64,000 bases of DNA from Styela clava (taxonomy: Eukaryota). The notes under the pieces were generated by a model that was not told the DNA's origin, did not search any database, and saw only the letters and a program-made list of their open reading frames with translations. Positions 1 through 47,538 of this stretch are shown piece by piece. Every line of letters begins with the position of its first letter. Position 1 is the stretch's first letter. The stretch is from contig NC_135251.1 in the NCBI RefSeq assembly GCF_964204865.1, forward strand, positions 14,880,001 through 14,944,000, in the 5' to 3' direction. The translations under genes and the position numbers were made by a program.

Positions 1-524
1 ACGCCGGTTTCTCCAACCATGAAGCCGACTCCAGTGTCAACTAAAAAGCCATTTGTCGCGTCTAAAAAACCATCACCTAAGAAACCAATTACACCAAGCA
101 AACCCCCAAAAATTCCATCGAAGAAACCCGAGACGCCGGTTTCTCCAACCAAGAAGCCGACTCCAGGGTCAACTAAAAAGCCATTTGTCGTGTCTAAAAA
201 ACCATCACCTAAGAAACCAATTACACCGAGCAAACCCCCAAAAATTCCATCGAAAAAACCCGAGACGCCGGTTTCTCCAACCATGAAGCCGACTCCAGTG
301 TCAACTAAAAAGCCATTTGTCGCGTCTAAAAAACCATCACCTAAGAAACCAATTACACCAAGCAAACCCCCAAAAAGTCCATCGAAGAAACCCGAGACGC
401 CGGTTTCTCCAACCAAGAAGCCGACTCCAGTGTCAATTATAAAGCCATTTGTCGTGTCTAAAAAACCATCACCTAAGAAACCAATTACACCGAGCAAACC
501 CCCAAAAATTCCATCGAAGAAACC
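1..524 (+). repeat. Coding tandem repeat, 132-bp (44-aa) unit, 4 copies, probably continuing upstream of the window
   Basis: Units start ACGCCGGTTTCTCCAACC at 1, 133, 265 and 397; peptide TPVSPT(M/K)KPTPVSTKKPFV(A/V)SKKPSPKKPITPSKPPKIPSKKPE. Confidence 0.95.
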
Positions 525-3500
525 CATTTCTCCGGTTGAAAAACCTAGAAAACCAACAGAAAAGCCAACAAAAAAACCATTATTACCAAGGAAACCATTG
601 AGAAAACCCGGCGCTGGCAAGAAACCTACATTACGAAGGAAACCTACTGGATCCAGACGAAAACCAGGCGTGGCTCCCAAAAAGCCAGCCACTCCGTCTA
701 AAGCACCTGCAAAAAAGCCAACCGCTCCAACGAGAGGGCCTCTGAAAAAGCCTGTTACAGGGAAAAGACCTAATTTACGCAGAAGGAAACCATTAGGAGC
801 TAGAAGGCGACCAGGCGTAGCTCCCAAGAAGCCCATCGGAACTATAAATAGGCCAACCCCAGTAAAACAAAAGCCTGGTGAAACTGCCAAAACACCTAAC
901 GTTCTGATAAAACCAACTTCTGTGATTGAAAAGCCAGTAACAACAGCCACTGCGACAAAGGAACCAACAAAAGAAATAATTATACAGACCACAGAACCAC
1001 CTACGTCGCCAAAATTGTCTCCCACTACAACAAAAGCAACCGTATCAACAATTCAGCCTAGCACAACCACAAAAGAATTGAAAAAAACAACCGTTGCAAC
1101 CACTATTCCTATTGTGGCGACAAAGATACCAACTGAAACCAAAAAACCAACCATTCCGAGACAAGCTCCTGCAAAAAAGCCAACCGCTCCAAAACGAGGG
1201 CCACTGAAAAAGCCTCTCACAGGAAAGAGACCCAATTTACGCAGAAGGAAACCATTGGGAACTAGAAGACGACCAGGTGTGGCTCCTAAAAAGCCTACCG
1301 GCACTACGAAGCCAGTTCTAACCCGACAAAAGCCTAGTGAAACTGTCAAAAAACCTGAAGTTCCGACGAAACCAACTACTCCAATTCAAAAGTCAACAAC
1401 AACTGCGACAAAGGAACCAACGACAGAAACAATTTTACAAACCACAGAACCACCTACTTCGCCAAAATCAACGACATCATCGACACAGAGATCTGTTTCT
1501 GTCACGGAGAAACCAGCAGTCACTAAAAAAACAGTCACGCCTAGTAAAGCACCTACAAAAAAACCGGTAGTTACAAGAAGGGGACCCCTAAAAAAACCTG
1601 TTTGGGGAAAAAGGCCAGCTTTATCTAGAAAGAAACCTATTGCTGGTATTAAGAAACCGGGAGAAATTGCAAAGAAGCCCGTGGGTACCAGAAAGAAGCC
1701 AGGTATGGCCAAGAAAAAACCGGGTCTATCTGTCAAGAAGCCAGCGGGTGCCCAAAAGAAACCGTTTGTTGGTAAGAAAAAGCCTGGAATCCAAGGTAAA
1801 AAGCCTGGTTTGGCTCGCAAGAAACCATTACTCGCCAGAAAGAAGCCTGGCTTTGGTAAAAAACAACCTGTTAAAAAGCCGCCAATAAAACGACGACCTG
1901 TACCAACTAAAAAGCCTATTAAAAAACCTTTGCCCGGAAAAGGTAAATTGGGATTAAAACCTGTTGCCAAAGGACGAACCGGACCTAAGCCTGTAGTCGG
2001 AAAAGCAATAAAAACTCCTACAACAACAAAATCAGCGGCAGTAAGTACAACAGAAGAACCAACTACTACTATTGCGCCAACCACAACTGAAATCACAACT
2101 ACTAGAAAAACAACCACCACGAAACCAACAACCACGACCCCCAAAACTAGGCCCACAATGCCAACTTACCGCGCATTACAACCAATAACGCGACGACCAG
2201 CTTACCCACGCCGACCCACAACTCGTCCACCTCCTCGATTAGCAGCACGAGGTCGACTTGGAGCCAACTCTGGATTCCGCCCACTTGCCCCCGCAAGGCC
2301 ACCGATACGAGCCCGCCCGTCACTCCCAATTTTCCGTCCTCTTGTACCATTGAGTAACCGACCCATATTGCCAAGACCCGTGGGTACGTTTTCACCCGAG
2401 AGTGTTGCAATATTGAAAAAAGTTCCAAATGTACCGGGAAAAGAATTAGATCAGATAGATGATAAATTTGCTGTGGCGAAAGATGGAGATGCATGGCAAG
2501 GGATGGATGATGGATTGAATTATAAGCCTCAACTGACTATTAACAAAACAGTATATGGTTGCCCATACTACGAATCAAATATTACAGTTTTTAGCTTTTG
2601 GCCAGGAGGCTTCAATGCAATGGTAAATTTCTCTCGTCTAACGAAACCAATGATGAATGGATGGATAGTGAAAATACAATTCGAGTCACCAATACTTGAT
2701 ATTGAAACCCACGTTGTTAATTTCTTCATCGCCACAGACGACAGAAAAACCGTTGCGTTTTTGCCTAAGCCGTATATGGCAGTACTTCATTATAATCAGG
2801 TAAGTGCGATATTGGTGTATAAATTTTTCATATTGATAACTTGGTTAATATTATAACATATACAAATCAAAATACAACATACACAATATAAAATTTGTAT
2901 CACATATATTATGTCAACTATTTGAATTTTCGCAAATTTTGCAGGATTTGACAGTCGCCTTTATTGGAAAGGTTGGCAATGAAGACATAAATGTGCCCCG
3001 TGGCAGAGCGTTGCTCATGGGAAAATGTACTGACGACATACTCGCTGGCAAAGTTGTTGGAAACATGTTTCAAGGACAAAAAGTACTAGAAAAACTTGGA
3101 AACGGCACTAAAGCAAAAGAGTGAGTATCGATGTATTTTTATTTTATTTTTTTCATTACATCATCTGTGAAATTTCCACACAATTATGAAGAATCATTCA
3201 GAAACTTATTTATAACTTGCATTTATATGTACATTTGAAAAATATTGTTTTAATTCCAGGGTTCCAAGCGCTCCAACAAGACCTCCAGCAGTTTCAAGAG
3301 CGACAGCCACTGAGCAAACTCCAGCTCCAAGAAGACCAGGAGCGGCAGGAGCTGGAGTCAGGCGGCCCGGTGCGGCAGGAGCTGGAGCCAGACGGCCCGG
3401 AACGGCTGGAGCTGGAGCCAGACGGCCCGGAACGGCAGGAGCTGGAGCACGACGACCAGGAACAGCAAGACGCCCTGGAGCAGCACCCCGACGAACCGCT

Positions 3501-6500
3501 CGGCCAAGATCAGCATTCAAGCCTCGTCCCGGGAATATCTGGCCCGCAAATAGATGCTTGGCAAAATCTGCTAATGGTGTCCTTCCAGAAGGAGGATTAA
3601 CAAGACCAAAATGGTCTAAAAGCTCAAGCAAAAGTAACCATAACAAGTCTTTAATTTTATCATAAATTTACAAGATTTGTTGGTTTAGTTTCTCAATCGT
3701 GAACAAAAACGCAAAATTTTGTATATATATATCAAATATGCGGAAAAATATCAATACTTGAAACTTGAATTTGGCGATGCTTTGAATGAATTAGGAATTT
3801 TGGTAGAATGATAGCAATAATTTGAAGTCAATTTCCTGCTTATTGGTCGCTTCGTATTACAAGACATAGAACATCATTTACATCATCATATTATCATCAT
3901 TTGTTTCGCTTCATTATAAACACTGTCAAAAACCTCATCTACATTATCTATATTTTACCTTTCATTTACACAGAATCAATCTATGATTACAACGAAGTTC
4001 TGCATAAATCTGGACTTTTCTACATGGCTCAGAAATCTGGCAAACTTCCTAAAATATTCCCAATACCTTGGAGAGGCGACTCTGCACTGAAGGATGGATG
4101 TAACACTGGGGACGCCTTGTTCGGAGGACTTTACAGTGGTAAGTTTGAGATTAACTTCTTTTACAATCGATAATGTTTAGTAATACATAAATGAATTATA
4201 TCTAGCCTAATCCAATTACAATAACGTATATGTATAATAATTTTGGCAGCTGCGTAATTTTGAATATAGACCTCTTCTCATTCATAAGATAAGTAGGTTG
4301 AGCGAGTCCAAACATATAAATCAGATATATATAGCTTCTGTGATCATCCGGAGAGCAAGAGCACGCATGATGATCCCGCATTTTAAATCTGTATATTTCG
4401 TGTTCTGATGAGTTGTCAACGACACCATGGATGTGACTGCAATTTGCTTATTCAACGCTGAACATAAAAACATTGTTATATCATCATAATCACTATGTTT
4501 CGATAATTTGGCCCACTGCTCACAAAAAAACTATTCTGATCAACTTTAGGTGCTGGTTACGAAAAGTCTACATTGGCTATTGCATTTACAACAACTATGC
4601 TTGCTTGGGGAGGAATTGATTATAAATCAGCATACACTGCCGCTGGTGAATACGACGATCTTGTGAAAATCATTAAAAGTAACGCAAACTATTTGATTCG
4701 CTGTCACACAAGCGCGAATGAGTTAGTGGTTCAGGTCAGTTTAAATTAAAAATGTAATAATATATTTTCATCTCTTGATCTATACTGCGTTCGAACCCGA
4801 ATTGGGCCACCAGTACTCAGTTACCTCACCTTGGGTGTAAAAACTCTGGTACATAATTTATATATAATGTTGCTGGTAGATGAGAATACTTCTGAACAAA
4901 TTGTTGTTTCAAACATTTGCGGTAAATAAAAGTCCAACATATGGACAATCAGTATAGCTGGTATATGACTTAACAACCTTTATTTCTTAGAAATATGGAA
5001 AAAGTAAGTAATAAAATACCAAGTAGTAATGACCATACAACGAAAGAATAATGATATGATTATATAAATATGAAAGAGATGTGCTAACATGTAGAGAAAG
5101 ATGTGACTACACATTACAGCATGCAGCTTACATTGTCAAGCAACAATAACTATCATTTATATTTGTTTCTTGAACTATAGATAGGAGACTATGATTCAAG
5201 TGGAACGAAATGGACAAGGCCAGAAGAGCTGGACGTAGAAGGAAGAAAAATATACAAGATAAATACTAAAAATCCAGGCCAAGATGTTGCTGCTGAAACA
5301 GCGGCCGCTCTAGCTGCAGCAGGATTCATGTTCAAGTCAACAGGTATGTCACCCGTTGAAATAGTTAATAATTTTAATCAATTATTTGTTTTACTTAATT
5401 AAATTAATCACTGCTAAGACATAGATTGTTGATGGATTTAGGGGAATGAACTCGCATAACTTTGCCATGGAGTGTTAATATTTAAATTTCATTTTCTCCA
5501 TGCCTTTTACGTTCATAATAAAGCTGGATAAATCCTATCTTAAACTTTTGTTGTTTTACCCCGGTCTTGCGAAAAATCGGGAAACAAACTGTTAGAAAAT
5601 TTCACTTAATTAATTCCACTGGATTAAAGAAATGGACAAATCATATAAGACAAGCCGAGAGTTGGTTGTTGTTAAATATAATCACATAAGTAATTCAGGA
5701 AGTTCTTTCGGAATTTAGTTGATTTAATGGTAATATGAGCTGGAAGGAGATATCGTTAATGGCATGATGTTATCTTATTCTGTCTCGCACAAAACGACTT
5801 GTCAGAATTTAACTCCGGAATTTTTGTTCAACAGATTCCAAGTTTTCTCAAGAATGTTTGCTCCACGCCAGGCAATTGTACAGTTTTGCACAGAAATATC
5901 CAGGCAAATATAGTCAAGTCATTCCCTCAACTGCGAACAGATATCATACGACATCTGACACTTTGGATGATTTGGTAAATTAATTATTTAGTATATATTA
6001 TTTATATTACTAAATAGGACATTACAATTCAACGTATTTGGTAGATCGATCATAGCTAAACATAACAGATAGAAATGCTGTGGTTACTCAAATTATATCA
6101 CAGTTAATAACTAGGTAGCGATCGGAGACCGCCGACTTATCGAACTTCCGCATGTTCAATCGCTCTGACTCAATAGCGACACCGCGTGTCCCATCACTTA
6201 TTAAATAATATCTTGCTAATTATACCACATAATTCATCCAAAATCAAGAGGCTTCTGGTCCGAGATATGATGGATGCACATGCAAAATTTGGAGCAGATT
6301 TAACCTCGCTTTCGTGAGATATCGCGTAGCATACGAAAGTGTCTAACAGACAAACAGAAAGACAAATACCTATCAACATACTTATCGATCGAGATCGCTA
6401 AATAATAAATTTGACTCGGTTTCCTCAAGTAATCTATTCTATTTTTCACGCGGCCAATAAACCCAATGCAGGCTATATTTATTACTATCTTGATGACATT

Positions 6501-8666
6501 TTTACCAAAAAACAACGAATGTGGCTGAAAATCAGAAAATTTGTTATTATTATGATACAAAGTAAAAATAAACTCAAACTCTTCAGCGGGCACAGCGGCA
6601 TTTAATTTTTGCGAATATTTTTATATTAACTTAAAATTTCCTGCTCATTTCAGGTGTGGGCAATGCTTTGGATGGGTAAAGCTACAGGAAATAAAGCATA
6701 TTTTGAAAGAGCAGAAGCTATGTACAAGAAAATCACCACAAGTCCTGTAAACCTGTTCTACTGGGAAGATAAAACAAACGCATTGCCGGTATGTTTTGTC
6801 GATAATATTTTGCATATTGAAGTCCTATTAAAATAACCAAATTGTGAAAGTCTTGTGGAAGTATACTCAGCTCCAAGTTTGCTGGCTGAAGATAAGCCAG
6901 TTAGATTAATGCATAATGCAATGCATATTTATATTAATTTAGTTTCTGTATTTTCATACTTTCATACATGCAAATTCATACTTTTGCCGAATGAATGTGT
7001 CTAACGATCTTTTTTAATAGCGAAGGACGTTTATGTAAATTTTCAACTATTGAAAAATCATAACATTCAGAAAATCGTTAATTCCATTTATTTACTGAAT
7101 TAATTGGAAATTATTGAATTTTCAGATATTGTTAGCCAAATTCACGAAAAAGAAGGATTATTTGATAGAGTCTAGAAAATTGATAATCAAACTGGCGAAG
7201 AATGGAACGCGAACACCGAGCAAACAGCTTTGGTTACATGAAAAGGGAACAAACATGCACACGGGTAATTTTGTTAAAATACATTCTCATTACTATTTTC
7301 AAACTCTTGAGAAGTATTAGTTTATCTTATGAGAATGGATAAATGTCCCAATTCCTATTTGGAAGACAACTACAGAATGCGTCATGACAATGGGAAAGTC
7401 AAGTCGGCATCGGATTTAGGCGCTAATAGAACTATATTCGATTATGTGTGACCAGAAAATCGGCAAACAAACTTCATAAAAGACTACTTTGTTTTATTCA
7501 AAAGTATTTTTTATTAAAATTTTATAGCAAACTCTGCGTTTTTGGCACTGCAGACAGCAATGATATATAAACGCTTTCCGTTCGGATCAATAGCAGCATC
7601 ATTTGCAGAGGAACAACTTCATTTGCTTCTGGGTGACGGTGAACGTAGTTACGTTGTCGGATTCGGTAAGAATTACCCGAAACGTCCTCATCATATGGCA
7701 AGGTAAATGACTTTATTGTTTGTAAGATATTTCTTGCATTCCCCAATGATAACAAGAACCCGGCTTGTATTTAGGGAGTCTATAGCTTGGGGATATATTA
7801 GATTTAAATATAATATTAGTCGAGACGTGATATTGCAAATTATTCTAAGGTGCATGGTGGGGGTTGACGTATAATAGGCATAATTAACTTAGGTACCATA
7901 ATATTACATTTTTAAGAAGTCAGTGTATTACGCAGTACGGTGGTTCATTTATTGTTTCACAACGCTTCGTTTTTTAAATCCTTGCTAGTTGTGTAACTCG
8001 TAGTATTACTGTACTCGGAGGTATTCTTCTGTACTGTCAGGAACCTACTACTGAGAGTTATATTCCTGCTTATTAGTGATGAATAACTAACAAATATAAT
8101 ACCTTAATTTTCAGTTCATGTCTTGATCCACCCGCTAAGTGTGATGCTTCTCGTTTACGTATATCAGCTGACAGTCCACATACATTGTATGGAGCCTTGG
8201 TCGGTGGACCTGATCAGCAAGGAAAGTGAGTACAATTAACTTATTTGATGAAAATATTTTGGTTAGAACTGAGTATATACTTGGCTTACGGAATATTAGC
8301 AGAATGAACAACAACCTTTTAATCCTTCACAGTTAGTTTTTTTTATATATTTATAGCAACCCAAAATTTCCACAAGATACATTTGTTATTAATACGATTT
8401 CTCAGGTGTTTAATCGAAATAGGTTTTACAGATAATGATTGACGACACAACTGTTAATATTCTTTCATTCTTCATTACCATACAGATACAACGATTACAT
8501 TACGGAGCAGATTCAAAACGAAGTAGCCATCGATTTTAATGCTGGATTCCAATCAGCTATAGCAGGGTTACGAGAAATGCAACTCCCGGGAAAATATCTG
8601 ATAAAATCCTCGTCAAACCAGTTGCGTAGGGTGGGACAACCTGTTCGAAAGAACAATGCAGGATAA
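1..8666 (+). CDS. 5'-partial multi-exon gene: Lys/Pro/Thr/Arg-rich repeat region + CBM2-like domain + RRPG/AGAG linker + GH9 (endo-beta-1,4-glucanase fold) domain, probably catalytically inactive
   Basis: Exons 1-2799, 2945-3120, 3260-3633, 3974-4138, 4550-4734, 5181-5343, 5835-5974, 6654-6788, 7126-7264, 7528-7702, 8115-8225, 8486-8666. All junctions are GT..AG with matching phases (4743 nt, 1580 aa + stop), and the frame is open from base 1. GH9 motifs: YDYNEVLHKSGLFYMAQKSGKLP, WRGDSALKDG, TMLAWG, PGQDVAAETAAALAA, RSYVVGFG..P.RPHH, LYGALVGGPD, NEVAIDFNAGFQSA. Confidence 0.9.
2560..3000 (+). other. CBM2-like carbohydrate-binding module, split by intron 2800-2944
   Basis: ITVFSFWPGGFNAMVNF...MNGWIVKIQFESPI...DLTVAFIG resembles the CBM2 pattern W-x-G-G-F ... 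GW-x-V-x-x-x-F ... F-x-G and sits N-terminal to a GH9 domain, as in other invertebrate CBM2-GH9 proteins. Judged by eye. Confidence 0.65.
3330..3480 (+). repeat. Coding 30-bp (10-aa) repeat RRPG(A/T)AGAG(A/V) in exon 3 of the GH9-like gene
   Basis: The spliced frame (different from the ORF-track frame) reads RRPGAAGAGV RRPGAAGAGA RRPGTAGAGA RRPGTAGAGA RRPGTARRPGA. Confidence 0.85.
6111..6405 (-). mobile_element. Helentron-associated non-autonomous element (HINE/DINE-1-like), family 1, intronic
   Basis: Homologous to the copies at 10985, 14741, 15723 and 61935: shared core (GGCTTCTGGTCCGAGATA, GCAAAATTTGGAGCAGATT), (CAGA)n-like tract, subterminal ACTTATCGA repeat and CTAG-TT 3' end. Confidence 0.7.
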
Positions 8667-18139: not shown

Positions 18140-19940
18140 TTACACCCTGGCACTTCCATTTGCAGAAACCATTACTTCAAGTCCAACGTTATTTTCTCCA
18201 TCTCCACCTTCATTGCCGTTTTCCCCAACAGTAGGCTGCATACACGACGACTTTATTGCTATGAATGCCCTCAAGTGGTAGAAACCAAAAGACACCGCGT
18301 GTACAGCAGGTGCGCCTACTAAAATAACTGCAAAGACAACACCAGTTGAAACTCCTGGTTCTGATTTCCAGTCTAAAATACCAGCGTAAAATTCCGATTT
18401 ATCATTTGCTCCGTGCAGTATCAACGTAATCAATACGTACGTGATGCCGTATAGAGAGACGTAAACGAAATGCAAAAACCGAACCGGAACACGAGAAATA
18501 AACAGGTCTATAGTGACCAGAACTGAATTCATAACGTGCTGGTGAATATTGACAGCGTTACTAGTCACTTTGTTATCTGTAAGGAAACTCCAATACAGAA
18601 TTGTGATGATATACTGTGCTCCTGTTGAGGCTGAACTCGTCACCCATGTTAAATGGTGAAACCATCGTAGTTCGTCTGAAATAAATACATCCAGAAATAA
18701 CAAAAAAGTAGAACTTAAATTACATCAAAATGTCAGTTATACATAAGTCAAATGAAATTTTTCAAATATATTCAGTATATTTTATAATAACTCGAACCTA
18801 AAATTTCGATAATAACTTTGAATTTCCTTGGAAATAATAATAATAATTCTGCAAGATATGCAAGAGCAAACTTTTCATATGCCAATCGTGGTATTTAGTG
18901 CCATAAAAATTCAACTATACATTTCCTTTTGCACTATATAAAATATAATCACCTTTATTGCATTTGTTCCCCATACAACAATCTGGTTCAGATCTTCCAA
19001 AATAAGCATCTCTCGTTAATCCATATATTGAAACGACAAGATGAAGAAAGAAGTGAGCTACGAGAGTCCATTCTCCCCAATTTGATAGATATGCATAATA
19101 TTTAGTGTCGTATTTTATAAGATGCATAGCATTCATGATCGACCATAGTAAACAGTAAACGAAAATACATGCTCGATACGCGACGTAGACAGACTTGAAA
19201 CGAAACCACTGAAAATATAAAAATATGTTAATATGTATATATTTCTTTTTCAGTTAACTAATGATTTTGAATGTTATAATAATGTTTTATTATTTGAGCA
19301 CTGGAATTTTCTAATGGGTATATTAAGAAAGCTTGAAAGCCCCTACATAAGTGTAGATCCGTTCCAAAGTCACGTTAACTGAACCTTCAAGACGTAGACG
19401 AAGTTTGGAATTAGGCTATTAGCTGAAACATCTTTCAGTCAAAATTCAAACCGAATGGTGGTGAAGTTGATAACCTTGCGTGGTGAGACTATGAATGCGC
19501 GTTCATTCAATGTTATATTCTCAGATTCACCACACCAATTATATTCTCATCTGAAATTGTCGTCCAGGAGCCTGTGCTCCGTTTTTATACCAGATCGCTC
19601 ATAGTACCTAATTTTTCAGCTATTCATTTAACGTTTCTGAGGACTTGTAACCATAGACATCCCTATTAAAGAACTCTATCGTGATAGTCTCGAGTGGCTC
19701 ATAGTTACTGAACTTATGTGGAAAAAAATAAGGGTGCGTAACGGTACTTTGATACCCAATTATATCTTCGAATCAACTTTTAAAAAACACACATCCGTTG
19801 AACTAAAAAATTTTCAAATAAATATTCAAGTATTCTAAAAAAAAATTTGTTACCTGTGCTGAGTAGAAGTCAGTGGGTTTTGCATCGGCAAATCCAATAT
19901 GTTTACGTTGAAATTCATATGCACAAGAAGTAACAGCCAT
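18140..19940 (-). CDS. rost: Rolling stone-like multi-pass membrane protein, paralog A (292 aa)
   Basis: Exons 19940-19854, 19208-18953, 18675-18140 (879 nt, GT-AG, phases 0/1). MAVTSCAYEFQRKHIGFAD...DFYSAQ|W...YRA...YLSNW...RWFH..W...YW...HQHVMNS...DLFISRVPVRFLHF...ILDW. Confidence 0.88.
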
Positions 19941-21029
19941 TTTAATTTAAGACTAATGAAGCTTCACCATATGAGTCATTAATTAAATTTCGAGTGCTTC
20001 TACTAAATCTATTAGAAAAATAAGGTATGAACTCAAACAAAGAAGCACAAGGCTCCATTACTTCCATACGGTGTGAAAAATAATCGACTGTCCTTTGGAA
20101 CGTGTCACTTGACTAAAATTACGTCATGCCATAAATCAATAACAATTTTTGGCACAAATTTTCCAGGTCAGAAAAGAAGGGCGTGACAAACGTTTGTGCA
20201 TTTCTGCTTTGATAATAATTTTTATGGCACAGAAACTGCATATGCCAGAACACTATACGCCTATCAATACAGGCAAGCGATGTGTGAATAAATAAAAAAT
20301 TTGTAATTACTTTGTATAACAAAGTAGGTAATTGAACAACGTATAGCATAGAATTTCTGAAAGTATTACCAAAAGGTGTTTCTTCTGGTATCACATAGTT
20401 AATACTACCTCATATGAAGAAATCGTATGACATAATCTAGGCTAGAAATATTTATAATTTCCCAACAATGGTGGCGTTGGATTCACTGCATAATTTCGAA
20501 TACAACACCTGAATATATCGTTAATTACCTGTATATAATTGCAATCTACACGTCTGAAAGTCCAAAGTTGTTACGCACGTCTCATAGAAATCGTATTCTA
20601 TTCATTGTAAACACCTAATCCTTTCTAAATCTCTTCTACTGCAACCACGTTTTGGGCAGAAATTAATCGATTTAAAGTGAAAGGCATGCCGTTCGCGTCG
20701 CTCTAAAATAACTTTTATTTTGTCTGTTTCTGATATTAAATTGTTGCGTCATTCCGATTCGTGGTGACTTATCACGTTTCAAGTCAATCTTTTAATAACT
20801 CAACTAATGCATTATTTTTATCTTTTAATATTATGAAATTGAATATATTCCTTTTAGCCAAGTAGACTATTTTAAACAGATTTCAAGTTTGTAACAACAA
20901 CAGAAGACAATGACACGAGCCAATGTATGATTGCTCGCCCAGTTACACCTTGGACTGTCAGCACCGCCAACTGAATAATACCTTGGTACTGCAATATACT
21001 GCCGTTCATATACAGCCCAATATCCCGTT

Positions 21030-21130
21030 TTGAAGCAAGCCATTCAAATGCCAATTAGACAAGTAAGAATAAAAAGGATCTGCTGTTCGTACTCAGACCA
21101 AAACTGTATTTGCTATTGTTACACATTACC
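21030..21130 (-). pseudogene. Possible very old rolling-stone exon-2 relic
   Basis: Minus strand reads IANTVLV*VRTADPFYSYLSNW then a frameshifted EW, versus INTTIILVEAYPIYVAYLSNWAEW in paralog B. Same strand and inside the cluster, but the match is short. Confidence 0.35.
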
Positions 21131-22600
21131 ATCTTCAAGAAGAAACATTTTTAACAACCACATCTTTCCGCGTCAATTTTTGTGGAAGATGTATAAATTT
21201 TATCGAATCAAAATATCATTTTTTATATGCTTACTAATACCGATTTTACATTGTTTAAAAACAGTAAGTACTTTTATTGAACATTTCGCTCCTTCATTCA
21301 GAGGGCAAACTAATAGCCTGTTTGATGATTGCATTAGTTATAAGAAAAACATCGTAATTTCGCATATGAGGTTTCACAAGTAAGCATTTAAGTTACTGAT
21401 AATTCTTTACATGCTTGTTCCCCCTGATATTACAGCGTACAATAATAAAGTGTGCAACATTTTGTTTCGTGTTTTTATGTACTGCACAATATCTTTGGTA
21501 ATAAATCTAGAATGCTAAATGAACATTGATATTATTTATCTGTCTAACCCAACTCACAACCCTTCAGAAATACCCCAATGCGCGTTATCTACATCTATCT
21601 TTTGCGGCAAACTGGAATAATTTCTGTCAGACAGTATTTAAGACGCTGTCAATCGATTTCGATGCAACTTTAGTACCAGATTACTATTCTGTTCCGCCCG
21701 AGGGTTGGCTTCAGTGTGGTATTTTGTTTAGGCCATGGTCGAATAAGTGCAATTTAAGCAGTCAAAATTTTTCTGATATCCCCTTATGAGTAATTAAATA
21801 GTGCGATATTTGTTTAAGATCAAATTCGAAAGAGTGCAATTGGGTAATGACATTTTATTTTTCACAAATAAGGCTTTCTGATTAGTGTCTCAACAGTGAT
21901 TCGAAATAACGTTTTTGCAAATTTTCATTGTCGAGGTGTATTTAATTAAACGATAGTATTCAACAGAAATTAGTATTTAGCTCTTGCGACTTTTACGTCT
22001 CTTACTAAAACGTTTAGGACTAGAAAATTAGTGTACGTATCTCACTTGTACCCGAAATTTTGTATTTTGTGCAATATAAGTCTTTTCATGACATTATTAT
22101 ACATTTAGCGAAAAATCTATTATGAAGTCATAATAATTTTATGACGTCACTGAAAAGAGGGACCTCGCAAATAGCCTAGCCTAGTAGGGCCTCTCATCGT
22201 CTAAATTCGATCCTGTTCCTGCCGAATAGTCTGAACCCTAGACACTGACAGCTGGTGTTTTATTACTCCACACAATCGTATACTTCTCATTTACACCTAC
22301 TTGATAACAATTACAAAGTTTAGACCAAATAGATATTCATATATCAACAGTTGGAAAAACATTGCTCTTATCAGAGGAAGCCTTCACCACGTAGACAGTT
22401 TTAGAATTATACCAATTAATTTTAACAACCAGTGAAATATACTTTCGCGAAGAGTATTCTTAAATGTACTTTTAATTTAATAATTTTCGAACAAAATGGC
22501 AATATTCAAAATGAGAGGTTTGAACACGAGTCAAAAATCTGACATTGCGACAAGACAAAAAATTAGTGTATTCTTTTTTCCATACTCGTAGTTTTTCCAT

Positions 22601-24164
22601 TTAAACGTCCTCTTTGGGGTGTGACATCTCAAAACCAGAATTGTCCTCCCCGCTATTCTCTGAACTTGTGGAAGAACAACCACCACTTCTCGCAATGAAA
22701 GCCCGGAGATGGTAAAATCCAAAACTAACTAGATGTATAATGGGTGATCCTACAACGATCAGCCCAACACATACACCGGCACTGATACCAGGTGCACTTT
22801 CCCAGTCCAAAAGATTTGTATAGAAAGCCGATTTCACATCTGCTCCGTGTAGAATTGCGGTAAAAAGCACATACGTTAGTCCATAAAGGGACACATAAAT
22901 AAAATGAAATAAGCGAATTGGAATTCGTGAAATGAAAATATCTAAAATCATTAACACGGAATTCATTATGTGTTGGTGTACGTTTGCGGGCACAGAGGCT
23001 ACACTTATGCCAGATAAAAATGCCCAGTAGATAATGGTTACAATGAAGTTGACACCAGCTGTTGCCGTAAGTACAACCCAAGTTAAATGATGAAACCAAC
23101 GAACATCACCTGTAAAAGTAAATAATCGATATTTGTCCGCTTGTACATACTAGATATGAAGGCTACTGTGGCTGTGGTTGTTTCAAATACATTGATCCAA
23201 CAATTGCTCTAGGTCTACATCTATAATCATAACCGACTTGATTCGGGCCATCCAAATGAGTATAAGACAATAGTGAACGTGTTTCAGCCGCTTAGTTGTG
23301 TATACCAATTGTCTAGTCTATAGTATTATAATGATACATTCATTTACATGCTTGTATTTGAGTCTGTGAGGTGTGTGCAAAAACAGTTCAAATGGGCATA
23401 GTCTACCTAATCATGCATGACTTGGAATTTTCCGTTTTGTGGTAAACTATCCATATAATTTTTATGTTTTGGAGCTTATAAATGAAGTTGACCTCGTCAA
23501 ACTTACCATTGTTGCATTGGTTTCCTGGGCAGCATCCAACTTCAGTTGACGTCGAGTCTCTTGATTGTGAGAACAAACCATAGATTGCCACTAGAAGAGC
23601 AAGAAGAAAATGTACAACTAGTGTCCATTCCGCCCAGTTAGACAAATACGCAACGTAGATTGGGTATGCTTCTACAAGAATAATTGTTGTATTGATCGAC
23701 CAAATCAGACAGTAGAGAAACATGAAGGCACGATACAGAACGAACAGAATTTTAGAGTTGAACCACTGTAAAAGAAAATATTACTATTATATCTTTCATT
23801 GAAAAATTTTCGAGTTTAAAAAGCATTAACTTTGATAATGTATAATGTTGAAAAGTAAAAGCTTTTAGATAAAGCTCGTAAAATAAAATCATTTTCCATT
23901 GTTCTTGAAATTCTTTAACATGAACTGCAAAAGCGTTCAAATAGCAGTATGCATAAGCAGGATACTGGAATGTGTAAATTAATTTGAATAACGTAATATA
24001 GAAGTAGCTTACAATAAAAATTTAAAGCAATGCAATAGCACAAAGGAAAAATTTGGCAATTCGTTATACTGTATACTTACTTGTGAAACATAGAAATCCG
24101 ACGCAGAAGCATCTGCAAACGCAAAATGTTTGAGTTGAAATTCGTAACCACAGCTTGTGGCCAT
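22601..24164 (-). CDS. rost: Rolling stone-like multi-pass membrane protein, paralog B (283 aa)
   Basis: Exons 24164-24081, 23765-23507, 23109-22601 (852 nt); same intron positions and phases as paralog A; YLSNW, HQHIMNS, DIFISRIPIRLFHF, LLDW. Confidence 0.88.
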
Positions 24165-27100
24165 TTCGGTTTAAAATCTAAATCAGTTAAGCGTGAAATT
24201 TGTCTCTAACTGACTTGATCTGCAAACTTGAAAAAGGGCATTCAAATATATCAACTATTCTACCCAGAAAAACTGATCAAAATCGACATAAAGCAATTAG
24301 CCTATCGAATTCCTTAGTGTTTTACTACAGTAAAACCTCGTTAATAAGGATTGGTAGAATGCACGTATATATAAAAACTCTTTATCTATTCGTGCATTAG
24401 CCCGATAAGTTAATAGAGTATCGTGACACTTTCGTGTGCGCGTATGTGACAGTTATGTAGTTCCGGCAAGATGAGTCACGCGAATTGCTCAAGCCATGCA
24501 AGGTATGGACATCTATCAGTTAAATACAGCATAACGCATTGATCGCTGGAAAAAAACTAATTATCGATATATGGTGACGAAATACGATTTAGAATTTGCA
24601 TATATTGAATTGAAGAAGATACCACTCGAGAAGTATTATTTGTCTATAGCCTCGGATAGGAAACACCACATAAGGGACGATATAAATCTGAATGTGACAA
24701 AATTACAGTTCATATTTTGGACATACTGGTGAAATATACAACATTGAAATATCTTTCTGCTCGCACTATTTCAAGGCAACCTACCTAGTATTACTCTGGG
24801 TAGTGATTTAAACAACGATTACTACACTGTCCAGTAATCTCCTAGCTATATCTCTGCTACAGCAATAAATATAAACGTAAATTCTCCAGATACTGTCTGT
24901 TGTCTTTATACTATGTACGCGTTTACCAACTGGTAATTTGGTCAATCTCGAATTAGTAACATTCCATTTTCCTTTAGGCATATTCTGTACTGGCCATAAT
25001 TGGTCTTTGTCTCTCTCGCACTGTTTCGTCTTTACGCCTGAATAATTCACAAAAGCTGGTCATCTGCATTTGTTATGCGCGTCAGATTTGGTAGCATCTC
25101 GTGTTGACCCGAAGATATAGTCACTCATTGAGGTAGCTTTTAAAGCATGTGGTCACAGTCACATAATGCTTGGATGCCACAGTTTAAAACACGATTCAAA
25201 GAATGCTGCCGGCCTCGATAGCCGAATAATAGTAAAATTTACATGGGTGTTTAGGAAGTAACATTCGTGATCTCGTAAAGTTTTACTGTCTATTGTCTAT
25301 TCAGATATGATATAAGTTATGCGATATCGTATGTCCGACTTACTTTATCGTAAATAGAAGTAGACCCCATTACAAAATGTAGCTTAAAGAGAATTTTCAA
25401 AGGATTATTACCAATATTCTATCCAAACCTAAAGCATGAGTTAAATAAACTGCAAGCAAATAGTCCAGTTATCTGTAGATACCAAAATATACTTCATGCA
25501 ATGAATGCTTTTGATGGACCATTCGATAAGGATTTGTCCACTTGCATCGACTTCCGCGTTTACATCCGTCACAATGGGTTTTTAACCACCAGTTGAGGGT
25601 GACACAAATTCAGCTAGCTGCCCAAACACGTTTTCCGCTCATGTAACCACCTCGCTTTGAGTAGTATTCAGTTTCGCTTGTAATTTTTTAGTTCAAATGT
25701 ATTAGCATTAAATGATAGGGAATATTAGCCAGTACATTTTACAGATGAAGCTCGAGCGAAAACTTCGACGATTAGAAAAGCGAAATCAACATACAATCAC
25801 GGAGACACTCCAAATAGGCTTCAAACTATCCCAAAACTCAACTTGGTCTTCGGATTATAAAACCTGGGTATAAAAATAATTTTTCTGTTGCGAATATGTT
25901 CTATTGTATGTTATATTTTATAATGATTTAAAAACAGCATATCGATGCCAGGTTATAACAATGATAAAATAAAGATGCGAACTTTACAAGATGTAAGAAT
26001 AAAACAAAGTACATGACCCCGACACACCACATGTATGTCGAAGTAATCTATTACAACAAGGACATTTGAGAAAGAACTTAACTCTAGCTCCTCCCCATAC
26101 AGAGATGAAGAGGAATTAGCGGAAAGAACTCCCTGATTGGCAGATTACCAAAATTTCAGATTAAGCTTCCACAGTCTAAACTATAATGTCGAACCTTCCG
26201 GTGATAGAAAATCGATTTCCTAAAATTAAACTTGTATGGATTTTATCAAAAGTAAGGAAAATGTACATATGGATCGTTTTGTTCTTATGTTGTTATTGTT
26301 TTAGTTGTTATTTTTCTTCTATATTCTTAGAAATCTATATTGTATTCTATATTGAAGAAATCGATTATTTTTAACTACTGGACCAACTGCACGGTTTTTA
26401 ATTCGCCTATCGTGACGACTGTCTTCCTTTTTGATTTTGCAAGTCAAATGTTTTTCGATACCGATGATGCACTGTAGACTAGATACGGTAAGTTACTGTA
26501 AATGGAAAGTACTGTCAATTTTTTGGTAAGACGTGTGCACGAAGCATCATTGTCACATGTTCTGATAAAGCTTAGGCAGTGTAGGTACCGGTAGTAAATG
26601 AGTTACGAAGGTCCACAGTTTCAACTACGTTAAGGATATGATTTTTGAAGTAATTGTGAGTGAAATACTTGATTCGGCTTTCGTGTCCATATATATATTT
26701 GAGCCTTGTTATCCTTCGCTTTATTTTATGTCTTGATAGATCGAAAACCTCTGATTCTTTATATTTGAATATCTAGAATACTAAGTAGTAAATATATTAT
26801 ACGTGTTTTCCAGCTCGCTTTGAATAATATGACCTTGTCGATTTTATCTACCCCTTTTTCTAAGATGTTGCGTTCCACCGACAGGAACTACAATAGCAAA
26901 GATTGTATATATATATATATGTTTCAATATATTAATTGCGTCTTGGGATAGTCGACGACAGTAGTTCAATAATACAGACAATAAAAAATACGCAACACTG
27001 ATAAATTGATATCGCACATTGTTATGATGGAATTTTCTATTTTGTCCATGCAGGAAAGCGGAAACAAATGCGACTGTTTCCTCATATGTTGAATCATTTA

Positions 27101-27269
27101 CTCATAATTAAATAATACACAATAATTAAATGTACGGGGCAACCGACATTTGTTTTGTCGTAATTGCATCAAACAGAATATTCGAATTTAATTTTCCCTC
27201 GTATACATACATACTCGCATATATAGACATATCTATATGTTAAACATAAGGTATAGTTGCTTTATCATA

Positions 27270-29320
27270 TTATAACAAGCTCTCTTCTTGACCCAGAGAA
27301 TCACAATTCAGTTTCTTATTAATATCTTCATCATTACTACCATTTGCAGTCTCGTTATTGCGTTGACATGCTCTGGAGTCAAGTTCTGAATCCCGTTTTC
27401 TTCCTGCAAGTTTCCTGGCTAAAAAAAATCTCAAATGATAAATGCCAAACGCTAGGAAATGTACTAGTGGAAACCCAACACAAAGCACGCTCAGGCCTAC
27501 AATCGTCGATATAACAGGGGCATCCTGCCAATCTATAACACCATTGTAAATCTTTGTCTGCAGCCCAGTGACGTACAAAATTAGCGTCAATAAAGTATAT
27601 ATAGTTCCGTAAAACGCCACATAGACAACGTGAAGAAGACGGAATTGGATGCGTGAGACCATCAAATCAATCGTGATCATAAGTGTCGTTATCCCATGTT
27701 GATGAATTATAATTAGTAATGGCATTGCGTCTTCTTCTCCGGCCAGAAAAGTCCAAAACATTATAGTAATCAAGTACTCAAGGTCTGTAGATAATGTCGC
27801 CAGAACCCAACAGAGACGGTGAAACCATCGAAGTTCGTCTGAAAGTGACAAAATATATTATATTTTTGGGCAAAATTCCGTTGTAGTCAAACAATTCTAT
27901 CATATGATGAATGATTAGGAAAAACTTTCTTATTTCTACTATAACGAGGACAAACTGTAAGTGTTGGTAAGCGTTTTTTCATCAATAAATACTTTTCAAT
28001 CACGCTTGATAATTATATACGCAAACCTATGTAGCAAAATGCATTTATTCGAGAGACGTTCAGACACTACAGGTATTCATAAATATAAATTAGTTTAACA
28101 ACAAAAATAGTGTTATTAACTAATAACTATAAGTAAGTACTAAAGTACCTTGCTCACGATTACTCAGAGCAGAATAATTCGGTATATCAGAAGATTCTTG
28201 TGTATTTGTGTAATTATTATCTTTTCTCACGCCGTACATAACCGTTCCAAATGAAACTCCAAAGTACAAACATAGTGTCCATTCCGCCCAATTGGTAAGG
28301 TAAGCAAACGTATAGAGCCCTTCATATTGGAATATATTCACAATCACCCATACGAGGGAATATAGAAACATAGCACCACGATAACATGCAAAAAGTCTTC
28401 TTGATTTGAACCACTGCAGTTAAAGTAAATATATATTAAATTTGCTCAAATTATAAAATAACAATATTAAAAAAAAACTAACAATCTTTTTATTACATTT
28501 TCCAAAAATTATTGAACACGAAGTGTGAATATGTGTCTCGTTTTCAAAAGTGTTGTGGGGTTTTCTACGAGACTAATGAAACAATCGATCTCAGAATTTT
28601 GAGAACCTGAGTATGGAGTCGCTAGAGGGCTATTACTTTAATTTGCTATTTCAGAATGTTGCGTCACCATGTGGCATTACTTCATTCCAAGGTAGCTATC
28701 TTCTCGACATGTCCGATACTCCGCTAAAGCCTTAGTGTACTCGTTATGGCTTCTCATGGAATTTGCAATTTCGATTGGAATGACCAGATAACAGAATTGT
28801 GTGTAAAATTCGCATAGGCAGCCGCGGTTGAAGACTGGGGACTTTCATGTCGATACATTCGAGCATTGCTCACTTATATATTGATATGAAATCGATTCTT
28901 AGAAACTTTTTAGCTAAGTATGTATTATCCATTAGTTTAAATTAGACAGTTGGCTTCATCGTTTTTTGTGCAACAAACATAAAGTTTGTTTATAGGCAAT
29001 CAGGAATTATCTACAAAAGAATTTCTTGTCAAACAATGTGACTTTAGAAGAGATGAAATCTTATAGATTTAAAAATTCCAAGATGTTGTTTCATATCGAA
29101 TTTCAACACAAATTTAAATATCCAACTCCAAATATTTCGAGAAATCTATGAAACATTTTGAGTTAAATAATAGCACATTGCACATAACGAAAAATCCCAT
29201 ATTTATACGATATATACGCAAAAAGGAACTGCAAACCTGTGAAGCATAGAAGTCATCCGGTTTGACATCAGCAAATCCAAAATGCTTTTTTTGGAACTCA
29301 TATCCACAACTCGTCGCCAT
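27270..29320 (-). CDS. rost: Rolling stone-like multi-pass membrane protein, paralog C (305 aa)
   Basis: Exons 29320-29237, 28413-28149, 27838-27270 (918 nt); YLTNW, HQHGIT, DLMVSRIQFRLLHV, VIDW. Confidence 0.88.
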
Positions 29321-45617: not shown

Positions 45618-47538
45618 ATGGAAACCAAATTTAGAAGAGTTCCATATTTGACATCACCAGTGAAAAAAGAGTTCCAGCCTTTTTATATACCCAACTCAAA
45701 TGATAGTGCGTTCATAAAACAAAGTCGTTCAGGTGAGATTTATTGTAGACTACATATTTACAAATTTGTCTCAAAATTTTGCCCAAATTTTATTTTATTT
45801 AAATATTTTGATCTATTATAACAAAGGATTTCATTAGTAAGTCATGAGTGTGAAATAAACTACTCAAATATACGTTTTGTGGAAACTGCAAAAAATGATA
45901 TTTACGTTCGTTCCATGATACGCCCGAAAAAAATCGAGCGATTTTTAGTAATGATTTACAATATTTTAATCAATTAGTCAGCACCACCATAACTGGCTAT
46001 TGAAAATATTATTTTCAATTTTTTTTGACAAAAAATAATTCTTGCAGCTATAGGTACAGATAGAAAGATATGCCCATTGTATTTGCATATATACTATTAT
46101 TACATTCCACTACTTTAATTCGAAAACAAACTTTATTCATCAAATTTTTAGCAGCTCACAGAAATAGCATGAAGGATTCTTTATGTTACAATTTAAATAA
46201 AGAAAAAGAGAATCGAGAAAATTGTCGTCTTGCTAGATTGCCTTCTCCACCATGGAAGTCCAAAATACCAATCGAAACGCATACCATGTCGGACAAACTT
46301 TTTCGTGACAAAAAGAAAAGAACGAGAGCGGCATTTACTCATTCTCAAATAAGGGAGTTGGAAAATAGATTTGCTGTTCAAAAATACTTGTCAGGACCTG
46401 AAAGATCAGAATTTGCCAATGCGTTAGATCTCACAGAAACGCAGATAAAAATATGGTTTCAAAACAGGTAAATAAATATTTGTTTTGAATGTGCATACCC
46501 GTCATTCTATTTGTATCTCCCTACAGGTAGAAAAAAATATTGCAATCAGCTTTTTTGTGAAGAATAGTTAAAAAAAAAACTGCATATTTGCAGCGCTCTC
46601 ATGTAAAAAAGCTATTCTTCAGATGTAAATATCTAAACTTTATTTCAACTGATTGTATGTCGAATATTGCTATCGTGATATACATGATTCTTTCAGCGCC
46701 ATTTTGTTTTTCAGAAGGTACAAAACAAAGCGACGTTTGCGACTAGCCGCTGAAATGATGTTTGTCGCAACACGACATCGTCTCCATGCTTCTGTGGCAT
46801 CAATGGTACAATCTCCAATCCAACGACTTATGTCGTTTCACCAACACAGATTCCCAATTCATGAATCACCATTATTTCAGCCCGTTTTTGGACAGATGCA
46901 CACAAATTCTTTATTTGGAATGCCAGGTAGAGTTCCAAAATTAATTGGATTCAAAGCTCTTCGTCCTTGTAAAATTATGTAAAGAATGAAGTTCTAAATC
47001 ATTTTTTTAATTAATTAAATAACCTCAAAAGACAATCAGAACACTTTAATTTCGAATATCTGTATTATACCGTAACACCTACATACGGTAGCCTACAATA
47101 GTTAAAATTTGACAGCTACAGATTGTTCTTTATTTTGCAGGGTTACCACAGGTTCAAGGCACATTCAGCAATAGAGTTTTTATATCCCCGGCAAAAAGGA
47201 ACAACATTCAACTACAAACTGATTTATTATCAAGCTTAAAATTTACGCCAATTGATGATACCAACTCACGCCCTCCCTTTCCAAGCGCAGCAACCACCAT
47301 CCCTGGTAGCATTTCAGACCAGAGAAGATTTGAAAATATACAAGACATTTGTTCCTTCCGTGGTACGGACTTGCACGACGACTTTGACAAGACCAAGATA
47401 CGTCCTTTTGATATTAGAGAACTTCTTAAGCCAGCAAATTCTGACTTGGTAAATTCACAAAATAGTCGTACTCGTGAATACAAATGCAACTCATACCCAC
47501 ATCAATTTCTGCTTTATCCAAAATATGGTGAAATATAG
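45618..47538 (+). CDS. NKX3-2: NK3-family (bagpipe/Nkx3) homeobox protein, ~346 aa; an upstream exon may be missing
   Basis: Exons 45618-45732, 46152-46467, 46715-46926, 47141-47538 (1041 nt, in frame). Homeodomain [53 protein letters not shown]|RYKTKRR has NK3 signatures (RAAF, YLSGPER, Tyr54 in RYKTKR). If the 46927 donor is not used, the frame ends at 46982. A splice acceptor at 45608 precedes the ATG. Confidence 0.85.

Follow-up and report, generated by a model that had tools for sequence, protein, structure and literature searches.

A long gene with a degenerate GH9 domain in Styela clava: a candidate cellulose-associated matrix protein

Gene structure and domain order

The window analysed here is a stretch of 64,000 nucleotides (nt) from Styela clava (assembly GCF_964204865.1, contig NC_135251.1, positions 14,880,001 to 14,944,000 of the forward strand), and its positions 1-8666 hold the 3' two-thirds of a single gene on the plus strand that starts about 10.4 kb upstream of the window. 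By exon-by-exon reading, the gene was found to comprise 16 exons over a span of about 19 kb, with about 3,032 codons. Judged from its sequence, the product of about 3,032 amino acids (aa) is probably, though by no means securely, a matrix protein that is secreted, associated with cellulose and without enzymatic activity. Its end, formed by a divergent carbohydrate-binding module of family 2 (CBM2) and a glycoside hydrolase family 9 (GH9) domain, has lost the ability to hydrolyse cellulose and most likely functions in binding or as a structural module. The N-terminal part of the chain consists of a candidate signal peptide, an NRG2_N-type domain, a weak Sushi-like domain and a 938-aa acidic Ser/Thr block, and the C-terminal part continues with a 974-aa polybasic block, a divergent CBM2-like module, an RRPG/AGAG linker and a complete GH9 fold.

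The 20 kb of DNA before the window were read, and negative coordinates denote positions upstream of window position 1. The four upstream exons were located by homology to a protein of Clavelina lepadiformis described below, and exon numbers count the giant exon as 1. Searches were run one exon at a time, and exon lengths and phases were summed for the gene model. The features preceding the GH9 exons, all on the plus strand, are the following.

-10382 to -10270, plus: start exon; donor gag/gtacgt, homology to Clavelina
about -5165 to -5034, plus: first exon of the N-terminal domain; homology to Clavelina
about -4718 to -4537, plus: second exon of the N-terminal domain; homology to Clavelina
-4379 to -3810, plus: Sushi-like exon; donor cag/gtaata
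-3358 to 2799, plus: giant exon of 6,158 nt; donor cag/gtaagt, phase 0
about -551 to 2370 (1 to 2370 inside the window), plus: polybasic Lys/Pro/Thr/Arg block of 974 aa; continuous open frame and composition
1 to 525, plus: four of eight tandem KKP units of 44 aa (132 bp); Tandem Repeats Finder
2551 to 2799, continuing in 2945-3120, plus: CBM2-like module, its N-terminal part of about 80 residues with the first Cys, WPGGF and NGW; sequence comparisons
2945 to 3120, plus: exon 2, the C-terminal strands of the CBM2-like module with the second Cys, and a short tail; AG/GT sites and phase fit
3260 to 3633, plus: exon 3, the Pro/Arg/Gly/Ala linker with RRPG-AGAG repeats; frame 3 open, phases fit

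All 15 junctions are of the GT-AG type and in phase, the summed exon length of 9,099 nt is a multiple of three, and the 16 exons are free of frameshifts and internal stops. Frame 1 of the plus strand is open from window position -3365 through the first base of the window to 2853; given a 2,055-codon open exon in a genome with a guanine-cytosine content of about 35%, a chance origin of this frame is ruled out. Exon 2 by itself had no family match in Pfam, and exon 3, which holds a 30-bp repeat in 4.3 copies, provides the RRPG/AGAG linker named in a preliminary description of this DNA. Splice phases and the Clavelina protein together suggest that the repeat exon and the GH9 exons are joined in one transcript. 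In the intron between the Sushi-like and giant exons, a GT-rich, microsatellite-like repeat (about -3800 to -3550) is open in several frames and could be mistaken for coding Gly-Thr-Ser/Arg repeats.

In the first exon, a short charged start leads into a hydrophobic core of 12 residues (Kyte-Doolittle values up to 2.6), and a small-residue site stands before the sequence C-V-T-P-E; this candidate signal peptide and the C-V-T-P-E after it are collinear with the N-terminus of the Clavelina protein, which carries the same C-V-T-P-E. The upstream extension of the gene, proposed in the preliminary description as a check for a signal peptide, thus yielded a candidate about 10.4 kb before the window, judged by its hydrophobic core and by the collinearity with Clavelina. 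Taken separately, the two N-terminal-domain exons gave weak matches to NRG2_N (PF25518; E 2e-4 and 0.002), and the upstream exons align collinearly to the N-terminal domain of the Clavelina protein. The agrin-type NtA family was not among the Pfam matches of these exons, NRG2_N being reported instead. The match of the Sushi-like exon is likewise weak (E 0.014).

Degenerate GH9 domain, CBM2-like module and charged blocks

The GH9 end of the protein can be followed over its full length. Eight of the nine GH9 exons (3974-8666) matched Pfam family PF00759 in order over positions 1-443, and GH9 chains of the PDB were the best matches of the GH9 exons. Exon 9, which Pfam did not match by itself, owes its placement to tblastn with a paralog and to column analysis.

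3974 to 4138, plus: GH9 exon 4, profile positions 1-54; Pfam E 1.7e-9, last full codon (4135-4137) Ser
4550 to 4734, plus: GH9 exon 5, profile positions 59-117; Pfam E 6e-11, codon 4555-4557 Gly
5181 to 5343, plus: GH9 exon, profile positions 119-169; Pfam, near-invariant Asp-His replaced by Ser-Gly
5835 to 5974, plus: GH9 exon, profile positions 173-218; Pfam
6654 to 6788, plus: GH9 exon, profile positions 219-268; Pfam
7126 to 7264, plus: GH9 exon 9, profile roughly 270-335; near-invariant Trp replaced by Lys
7528 to 7702, plus: GH9 exon, profile positions 337-388; Pfam, HHR changed to HHM, Met codon 7695-7697
8115 to 8225, plus: GH9 exon, profile positions 399-417; Pfam
8486 to 8666, plus: last GH9 exon (12), profile positions 420-443; Pfam, NEVA kept, stop codon 8664-8666

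The catalytic residues were compared with those of the termite endoglucanase 1ks8, correspondences being taken by offset from the aligned ranges. Exon 4 aligned over query residues 2-53 to 1ks8 residues 2-53, with a printed alignment to chains 4zg8 and 8ihw; exon 5 aligned to 1ks8 residues 62-113, so that the pairing of its Gly with Asp57 is by offset; and the last exon aligned over query residues 4-28 to 1ks8 residues 404-428, where Glu12 equals 412 by offset and the alignment to 8ihw pairs NEVA with NEVA.

4135 to 4137, plus: Ser in place of 1ks8 Asp54, catalytic base
4555 to 4557, plus: Gly in place of 1ks8 Asp57, catalytic base
8520 to 8522, plus: Glu retained at 1ks8 Glu412, catalytic acid

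Both catalytic-base aspartates are therefore missing, and the DAGD motif reads S-G-A-G across the junction of exons 4 and 5, in agreement with the inactive GH9 of the preliminary description. In most paralogs of the same genome the motif is split by the same intron, with the pattern D/A/GD-HVKF, where the window gene has S/G/AG-YEKS; in addition, KSTLAIAF stands in the window gene where KFGFPMA is usual. To place these changes among conserved positions, 21 GH9 domains with intact DAGD and NEV were aligned and the window exons added as separate fragments. At the columns conserved to at least 90%, the window gene kept 66 of 89 residues and changed 23. The changes include, in the domain numbering of the invertebrate GH9 protein P0085, D59S, D62G, D128S, H129G, W304K, R364M, R407I and Y419F, the last six of which each fall in a column conserved to at least 95% in the 21 intact domains; R407I and Y419F flank NEVA, before and after it respectively. 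Beyond the three catalytic positions, the roles of residues rest on alignment conservation and general knowledge of GH9. Altogether, the GH9 fold appears complete and its core looks maintained, and hydrolysis by the standard GH9 mechanism is excluded on sequence grounds because the catalytic bases and further near-invariant residues are changed.

A relative with the same loss was found by searching exon 5 against 1.84 billion representative proteins. The best matches were fragments at 77% (P0001), 65% and 50% identity, followed by the 822-aa protein CAK8689662.1 of the ascidian Clavelina lepadiformis. The search for a tunicate protein with CBM2 and a DAGD-less GH9, suggested in the preliminary description, thus led to one with a CBM2-like module and such a GH9. 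A 1,177-aa RefSeq isoform comes from the same Clavelina gene, LOC143461127, which is uncharacterised and bears the automatic UniRef name 'cellulase'. In the Clavelina protein, a signal-like N-terminus and C-V-T-P-E are followed by an NRG2_N domain (PF25518) at E 8e-11, then by a CBM2-like module and finally by a GH9 domain at E 1.5e-112; it thereby resembles the window protein from the candidate signal peptide to the GH9 domain without DAGD. It differs in its length of 822-1,177 aa and in having neither the Sushi-like domain nor the polybasic block; the long isoform carries about 20 acidic ETEAP-type repeats between the CBM and GH9. Its GH9 domain has T/N-A-G-G for DAGD and S-R-V for N-E-V, so that the catalytic Glu is lost, while HHR is kept.

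Among the 150 best matches, D-A-G-D is kept by almost every sequence that spans the motif, whereas P0001, P0003, P0011 and the isoform P0151, the closest relatives spanning it, have lost DAGD and carry K-[ST]-T in place of KFGFP. Furthermore, 14 near-invariant columns were found changed in both species, compared with about 6.7 expected if the changes were independent (hypergeometric p about 2e-4), and 4 of these 14 columns hold the same residue in the window gene and in Clavelina. Used as queries against the representative proteins, the CBM region and the N-terminal region of the Clavelina protein found Clavelina itself only, and cluster look-ups of the other DAGD-less matches gave no further named tunicate proteins. 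Since Clavelina shares the order of NRG2_N, CBM2-like module and DAGD-less GH9, the pseudo-enzyme scaffold is considered conserved. These observations are taken to mean that the pseudo-enzyme lineage already existed before the two species separated and that its reading frame has stayed intact ever since; the NRG2_N-type domain, the CBM2-like module and the dead GH9 form its conserved core. The Sushi-like domain, the acidic mucin block and the polycation are not common to Clavelina.

The CBM2-like module of the preliminary description is supported by several comparisons, though it lies below the Pfam cut-off. By BLASTP, it matched the CBM_2 module of P0085 (E 5e-6), which itself scores 23.2 bits in Pfam, just below the cut-off. 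A profile of the window and Clavelina modules, compared with a profile of three invertebrate CBM2 modules, gave an hhalign probability of 93.6% (E 2e-7). The window module is 33% identical to that of Clavelina (E 1e-14), and the Clavelina module covers positions 6-92 of the 101 of the CBM_2 profile (E 0.069). A Cys lies near each end of the module, and in the joint CBM alignment no column is invariant other than the tryptophans of WPGGF and NGW. In broader searches, phmmer with the CBM piece against the PDB returned chance matches only and no CBM2, the PF00553 profile had no match over the whole genome, the CBM piece matched itself alone in its own genome, and the window CBM region had no match among the representative proteins. 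An AlphaFold model was limited to the first 90 residues because the intron 2799/2945 splits the module, and at a pLDDT of 54 it is too poor to judge. On these comparisons, the module is regarded as a divergent animal-type CBM2, for which binding to cellulose is plausible.

The low-complexity part of the protein is encoded largely by the giant exon, whose first 938 codons form the acidic Ser/Thr block (T 22.7%, S 13.3%, E 10.1%, P 8.4%). This block has a net charge of -91, an isoelectric point (pI) of 4.1 and no Cys over its 938 aa; it has the composition of a mucin-type (PTS) domain, and its O-glycosylation is predicted. At about window position -551, the composition flips abruptly from acidic to polybasic. 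The Lys/Pro/Thr/Arg stretch had been put at 790 aa or more in the preliminary description; its presence was confirmed, and its measured size of 974 aa shows that figure to have been an underestimate. It is rich in K (20.6%), P (22.2%), T (14.1%) and R (5.5%), with a net charge of +229 and a pI of 12, lacks Cys, has 0.2% Tyr and matched no Pfam family. Tandem Repeats Finder reported a period of 132 in 4.0 copies with 95% matches at 1-525, and in the basic block as a whole an anchor motif recurs eight times at 44-aa spacing, together with three longer RGPLKKP-type units interleaved with Thr runs. Because the Clavelina repeats are acidic and differently placed, the polycationic stretch is lineage-specific, and the charged repeats, which evolve fast, are restricted to this lineage.

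The earlier label 'extensin-like' does not hold for this block. Plant extensins and proline-rich wall proteins resemble it in being basic, rich in Pro and Lys, repetitive and probably O-glycosylated extracellular sequences. An extensin identity was rejected, since the defining Ser-(Hyp/Pro)3-5 repeats and the Tyr cross-linking motifs are missing: the 974 aa contain zero Ser-Pro3-5 (SPPP) motifs and virtually no Tyr for cross-linking. In further contrast to extensins, the block sits among the several domains of an animal protein, and the ortholog does not conserve it.

Genome context and comparison with known systems

The preliminary description reasoned on the condition that the host is a tunicate, and the genome shows it to be a cellulose-making one; the ascidian origin of the closest named relative points the same way. 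The 377-Mb assembly contains a fusion gene of a GT2 cellulose synthase with GH6 at C9 (about 16.176-16.182 Mb), an arrangement that constitutes the tunicate-specific cellulose synthase, CesA (PMC10334666). The sole GH6 match in the genome at the threshold used lies at C9:16.18 Mb, 2 kb downstream of GT2/Cellulose_synt exons with QxxRW. In the region that was read (C9:16168001-16186000), a run of about 40 residues, most of them Gly, lies in frame ahead of the last GH6 exon of the synthase.

At least 20 GH9 loci are present in the same assembly. Of the 16 paralog loci in which one or the other half of the motif could be read, 11 keep D-x-G-D, and at least five other GH9 paralogs show a partial loss of catalytic residues.

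C1:15785366-15786186: GH9 paralog, second Asp site reads AAS (D..AAS)
C1:15790357-15791324: GH9 paralog, second Asp site reads AGN (D..AGN)
C16:18870575-18871410: GH9 paralog, first Asp lost (GGWYN)
C16:18879351-18881513: GH9 paralog, first Asp lost (GGWYA...GGD)
C2:29034012-29041439: tandem GH9 domains in one frame, N-K-V for N-E-V in both, catalytic acid lost

In the gene at C2:29.03 Mb, the end of one GH9 domain runs straight into the next, and a Thr/Pro-rich tail follows. Loss of GH9 catalysis thus seems to be recurrent in this genome.

Elsewhere in the window, a multi-pass membrane protein is represented on the minus strand at 18140-27851 by three exons or paralogs in tandem, and the two units tested belong to the 'rolling stone' family (Pfam Rost, E 2e-12 and 4.5e-10). 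A homeodomain exon is located on the plus strand at 46070-46471 (Pfam Homeodomain, E 1.6e-18), and at 59537-61189 on the minus strand an intronless gene encodes a 550-aa WD40 beta-propeller protein, which is acidic in its N-terminal region and has a tail rich in Lys.

The architecture was unfamiliar to the preliminary description, and the literature searched likewise contained no description of it or of a tunicate GH9 pseudo-enzyme. By its sequence relationships, the gene descends from the CBM2-GH9 endoglucanases common in invertebrates. Such enzymes, for instance P0085 and P0111 (about 590 aa; Pfam CBM_2 and Glyco_hydro_9), have an N-terminal animal-type CBM2, a Ser/Thr/Pro linker and a full GH9; the window exons are 40-55% identical to them, and the CBM modules align. 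In contrast to the window gene, these short secreted enzymes keep DAGD, HHR and NEVA, whereas the window protein is about five times longer and has additional NRG2_N-type and Sushi-like domains as well as about 1,900 aa of charged low-complexity sequence.

In plants, KORRIGAN is a class A GH9 of the cellulose synthase complex and a membrane-anchored, active endoglucanase. It offers a parallel as a GH9 protein tied to the making rather than the digestion of cellulose. Unlike KORRIGAN, the window protein is predicted to be secreted, shows no transmembrane segment in the parts read and has lost its catalytic residues, so that it cannot trim glucan chains as KORRIGAN does. The comparison with KORRIGAN, drawn in the preliminary description, is therefore a loose one, since KORRIGAN is an active enzyme; it has also been cited as an analogy by tunicate workers (PMC10986139; PMC10334666). 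The nearest conceptual parallels may instead be the GH6 domain of tunicate CesA and the GH18 chitinase-like lectins. The former is a cellulase-family domain within a protein of the cellulose pathway that lacks the catalytic Asp and is considered non-enzymatic (PMC10334666). It differs from the window GH9 in belonging to another GH family, in its bacterial origin by gene transfer and in being fused to a synthase rather than to a mucin-like protein. GH18 chitinase-like lectins have a glycosidase fold minus a catalytic residue and are kept as secreted glycan-binding proteins. These lectins have a different fold and ligand and are single-domain proteins, and in the window GH9 even the substrate-contacting residues are remodelled. 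As for other tunicates, a 2026 preprint describes a GH9 family that is expanded and expressed in the house-building epithelium of Oikopleura, its members being treated as active cellulases.

Candidate role in the tunic and alternative explanations

In the favoured explanation, a cellulose-associated matrix protein, the product would leave the cell by means of its candidate signal peptide, and its Ser/Thr blocks would be heavily O-glycosylated. The CBM2-like module, possibly together with the remodelled GH9 cleft, would hold the protein on cellulose microfibrils, and the NRG2_N-type and Sushi-like domains may bind another matrix or cell-surface partner and so link it to cellulose. The acidic mucin and polybasic blocks would act as an extended, hydrated spacer; the charged blocks could also pair electrostatically with each other or with sulfated glycans or other polyanions. 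A role of the protein in the tunic is inferred.

Several observations weigh against this explanation. The Pfam CBM_2 score of the module is 15.4 bits (E 0.024), under the cut-off of 24, and a third surface tryptophan or aromatic residue is not evident in it. In the GH9 cleft, a near-invariant His is missing along with a Trp, two Arg and a Tyr, and the cleft may not bind cellulose at all. For this reason, the 'two glycan-binding domains' of the preliminary description are uncertain: binding of a cellulose chain by the dead GH9 domain cannot be assumed. Conservation is documented by one named ortholog only, plus three short unnamed fragments, and independent losses followed by parallel relaxation could account for part of the overlap of changed columns between the two species. 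The Clavelina relative lacks the polybasic block, and its repeats are acidic ETEAP-type ones elsewhere in the protein. In addition, an in-frame TGA (window 3121-3124) directly follows the exon-2 donor, where retention of the intron would give an isoform ending past the CBM2-like module and without GH9.

An alternative judged rather unlikely is that the gene encodes a mucus, adhesive or gut-lumen protein, that is, a gel-forming mucin of, for example, the endostyle feeding net, the gut lining or the adhesive papillae. In such a protein, the CBM2-like and dead GH9 end would capture dietary or environmental beta-glucans or particles, and the opposite charges would drive a coacervate-like assembly. 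The placement of the 938-aa acidic Ser/Thr block directly before the 974-aa polycation, within one exon, fits this alternative, as such charge pairing is used in secreted adhesives and gels. Animal GH9 genes are, moreover, classically digestive (PMC10334666). However, nothing links the gene to gut or endostyle, a cellulose-making host offers an obvious endogenous ligand, and the charge blocks are not conserved in Clavelina.

It has also been considered that the GH9-derived domain was repurposed for a sulfated tunic polysaccharide, chitin, another glycan or a protein partner, with cellulose contacted by the CBM2-like module at most. Given how many near-invariant residues have changed, a new ligand for the dead GH9 is a serious alternative, even if its probability is put low. 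Besides the aspartates, substitutions affect the near-invariant His, Trp, two Arg and Tyr, and KSTLAIA stands in place of KFGFPMA; several of these changes are common to Clavelina, which suggests a surface remodelled under selection rather than simple inactivation. Against this, the window gene retains 66 of the 89 near-invariant columns, among them that of the catalytic-acid Glu, and there is no positive pointer to any alternative ligand.

That the locus is decaying or mis-joined is improbable. Under this explanation, a digestive GH9 would be turning into a pseudogene, or neighbouring mucin and GH9 genes would have been read as one. Exon 3, which is open in several frames and whose frame is fixed solely by the splice sites, and the stop codon immediately after the exon-2 donor could be taken in its favour. 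It is hard to reconcile with 16 exons lacking frameshifts and internal stops, with junctions that are canonical and in phase, and with the retention of fold-core residues. Against it, too, stand the CBM2-like module, which is itself divided between the giant exon and exon 2, and the Clavelina models, in which a single chain holds the N-terminal domain, the CBM2-like module and the GH9, and DAGD is likewise lost. Finally, it is very hard to credit that the protein is still an enzyme, a hydrolase or transglycosylase using the retained Glu with a substitute base or acting on another substrate, since this species, although its catalytic-acid Glu and NEVA are intact, has lost both base aspartates, the Asp-His pair and the Arg of HHR, and the Clavelina relative is also without the catalytic Glu.

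To our knowledge, tunicates are the only animals that make cellulose. Work on this ability has so far centred on the acquired synthase CesA and on GH6-1. It has been stated by the authors of such work that further genes must shape the tunic, and epidermal cellulases are still being sought (PMC10986139; bioRxiv 10.1101/2024.09.30.615758). A conserved, probably secreted protein with a cellulose-binding-type module and a dead cellulase provides a concrete candidate for knock-out and localisation. More tentatively, a family of GH9-derived matrix proteins without catalysis may have arisen in tunicates, linking the cellulose made by the horizontally acquired CesA to the extracellular matrix of the animal itself; this gene would be a conserved member, defined by an NRG2_N-type anchor, a CBM2-like module and a dead GH9. 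If this is true, such proteins would be missing structural partners that order the microfibrils of the tunic, and they would represent a functional counterpart of the structural proteins of plant walls, obtained by recycling an ancestral digestive enzyme. In view of the several degenerate GH9 genes in this genome, loss of catalysis may be a recurrent route by which a digestive enzyme becomes a matrix component.

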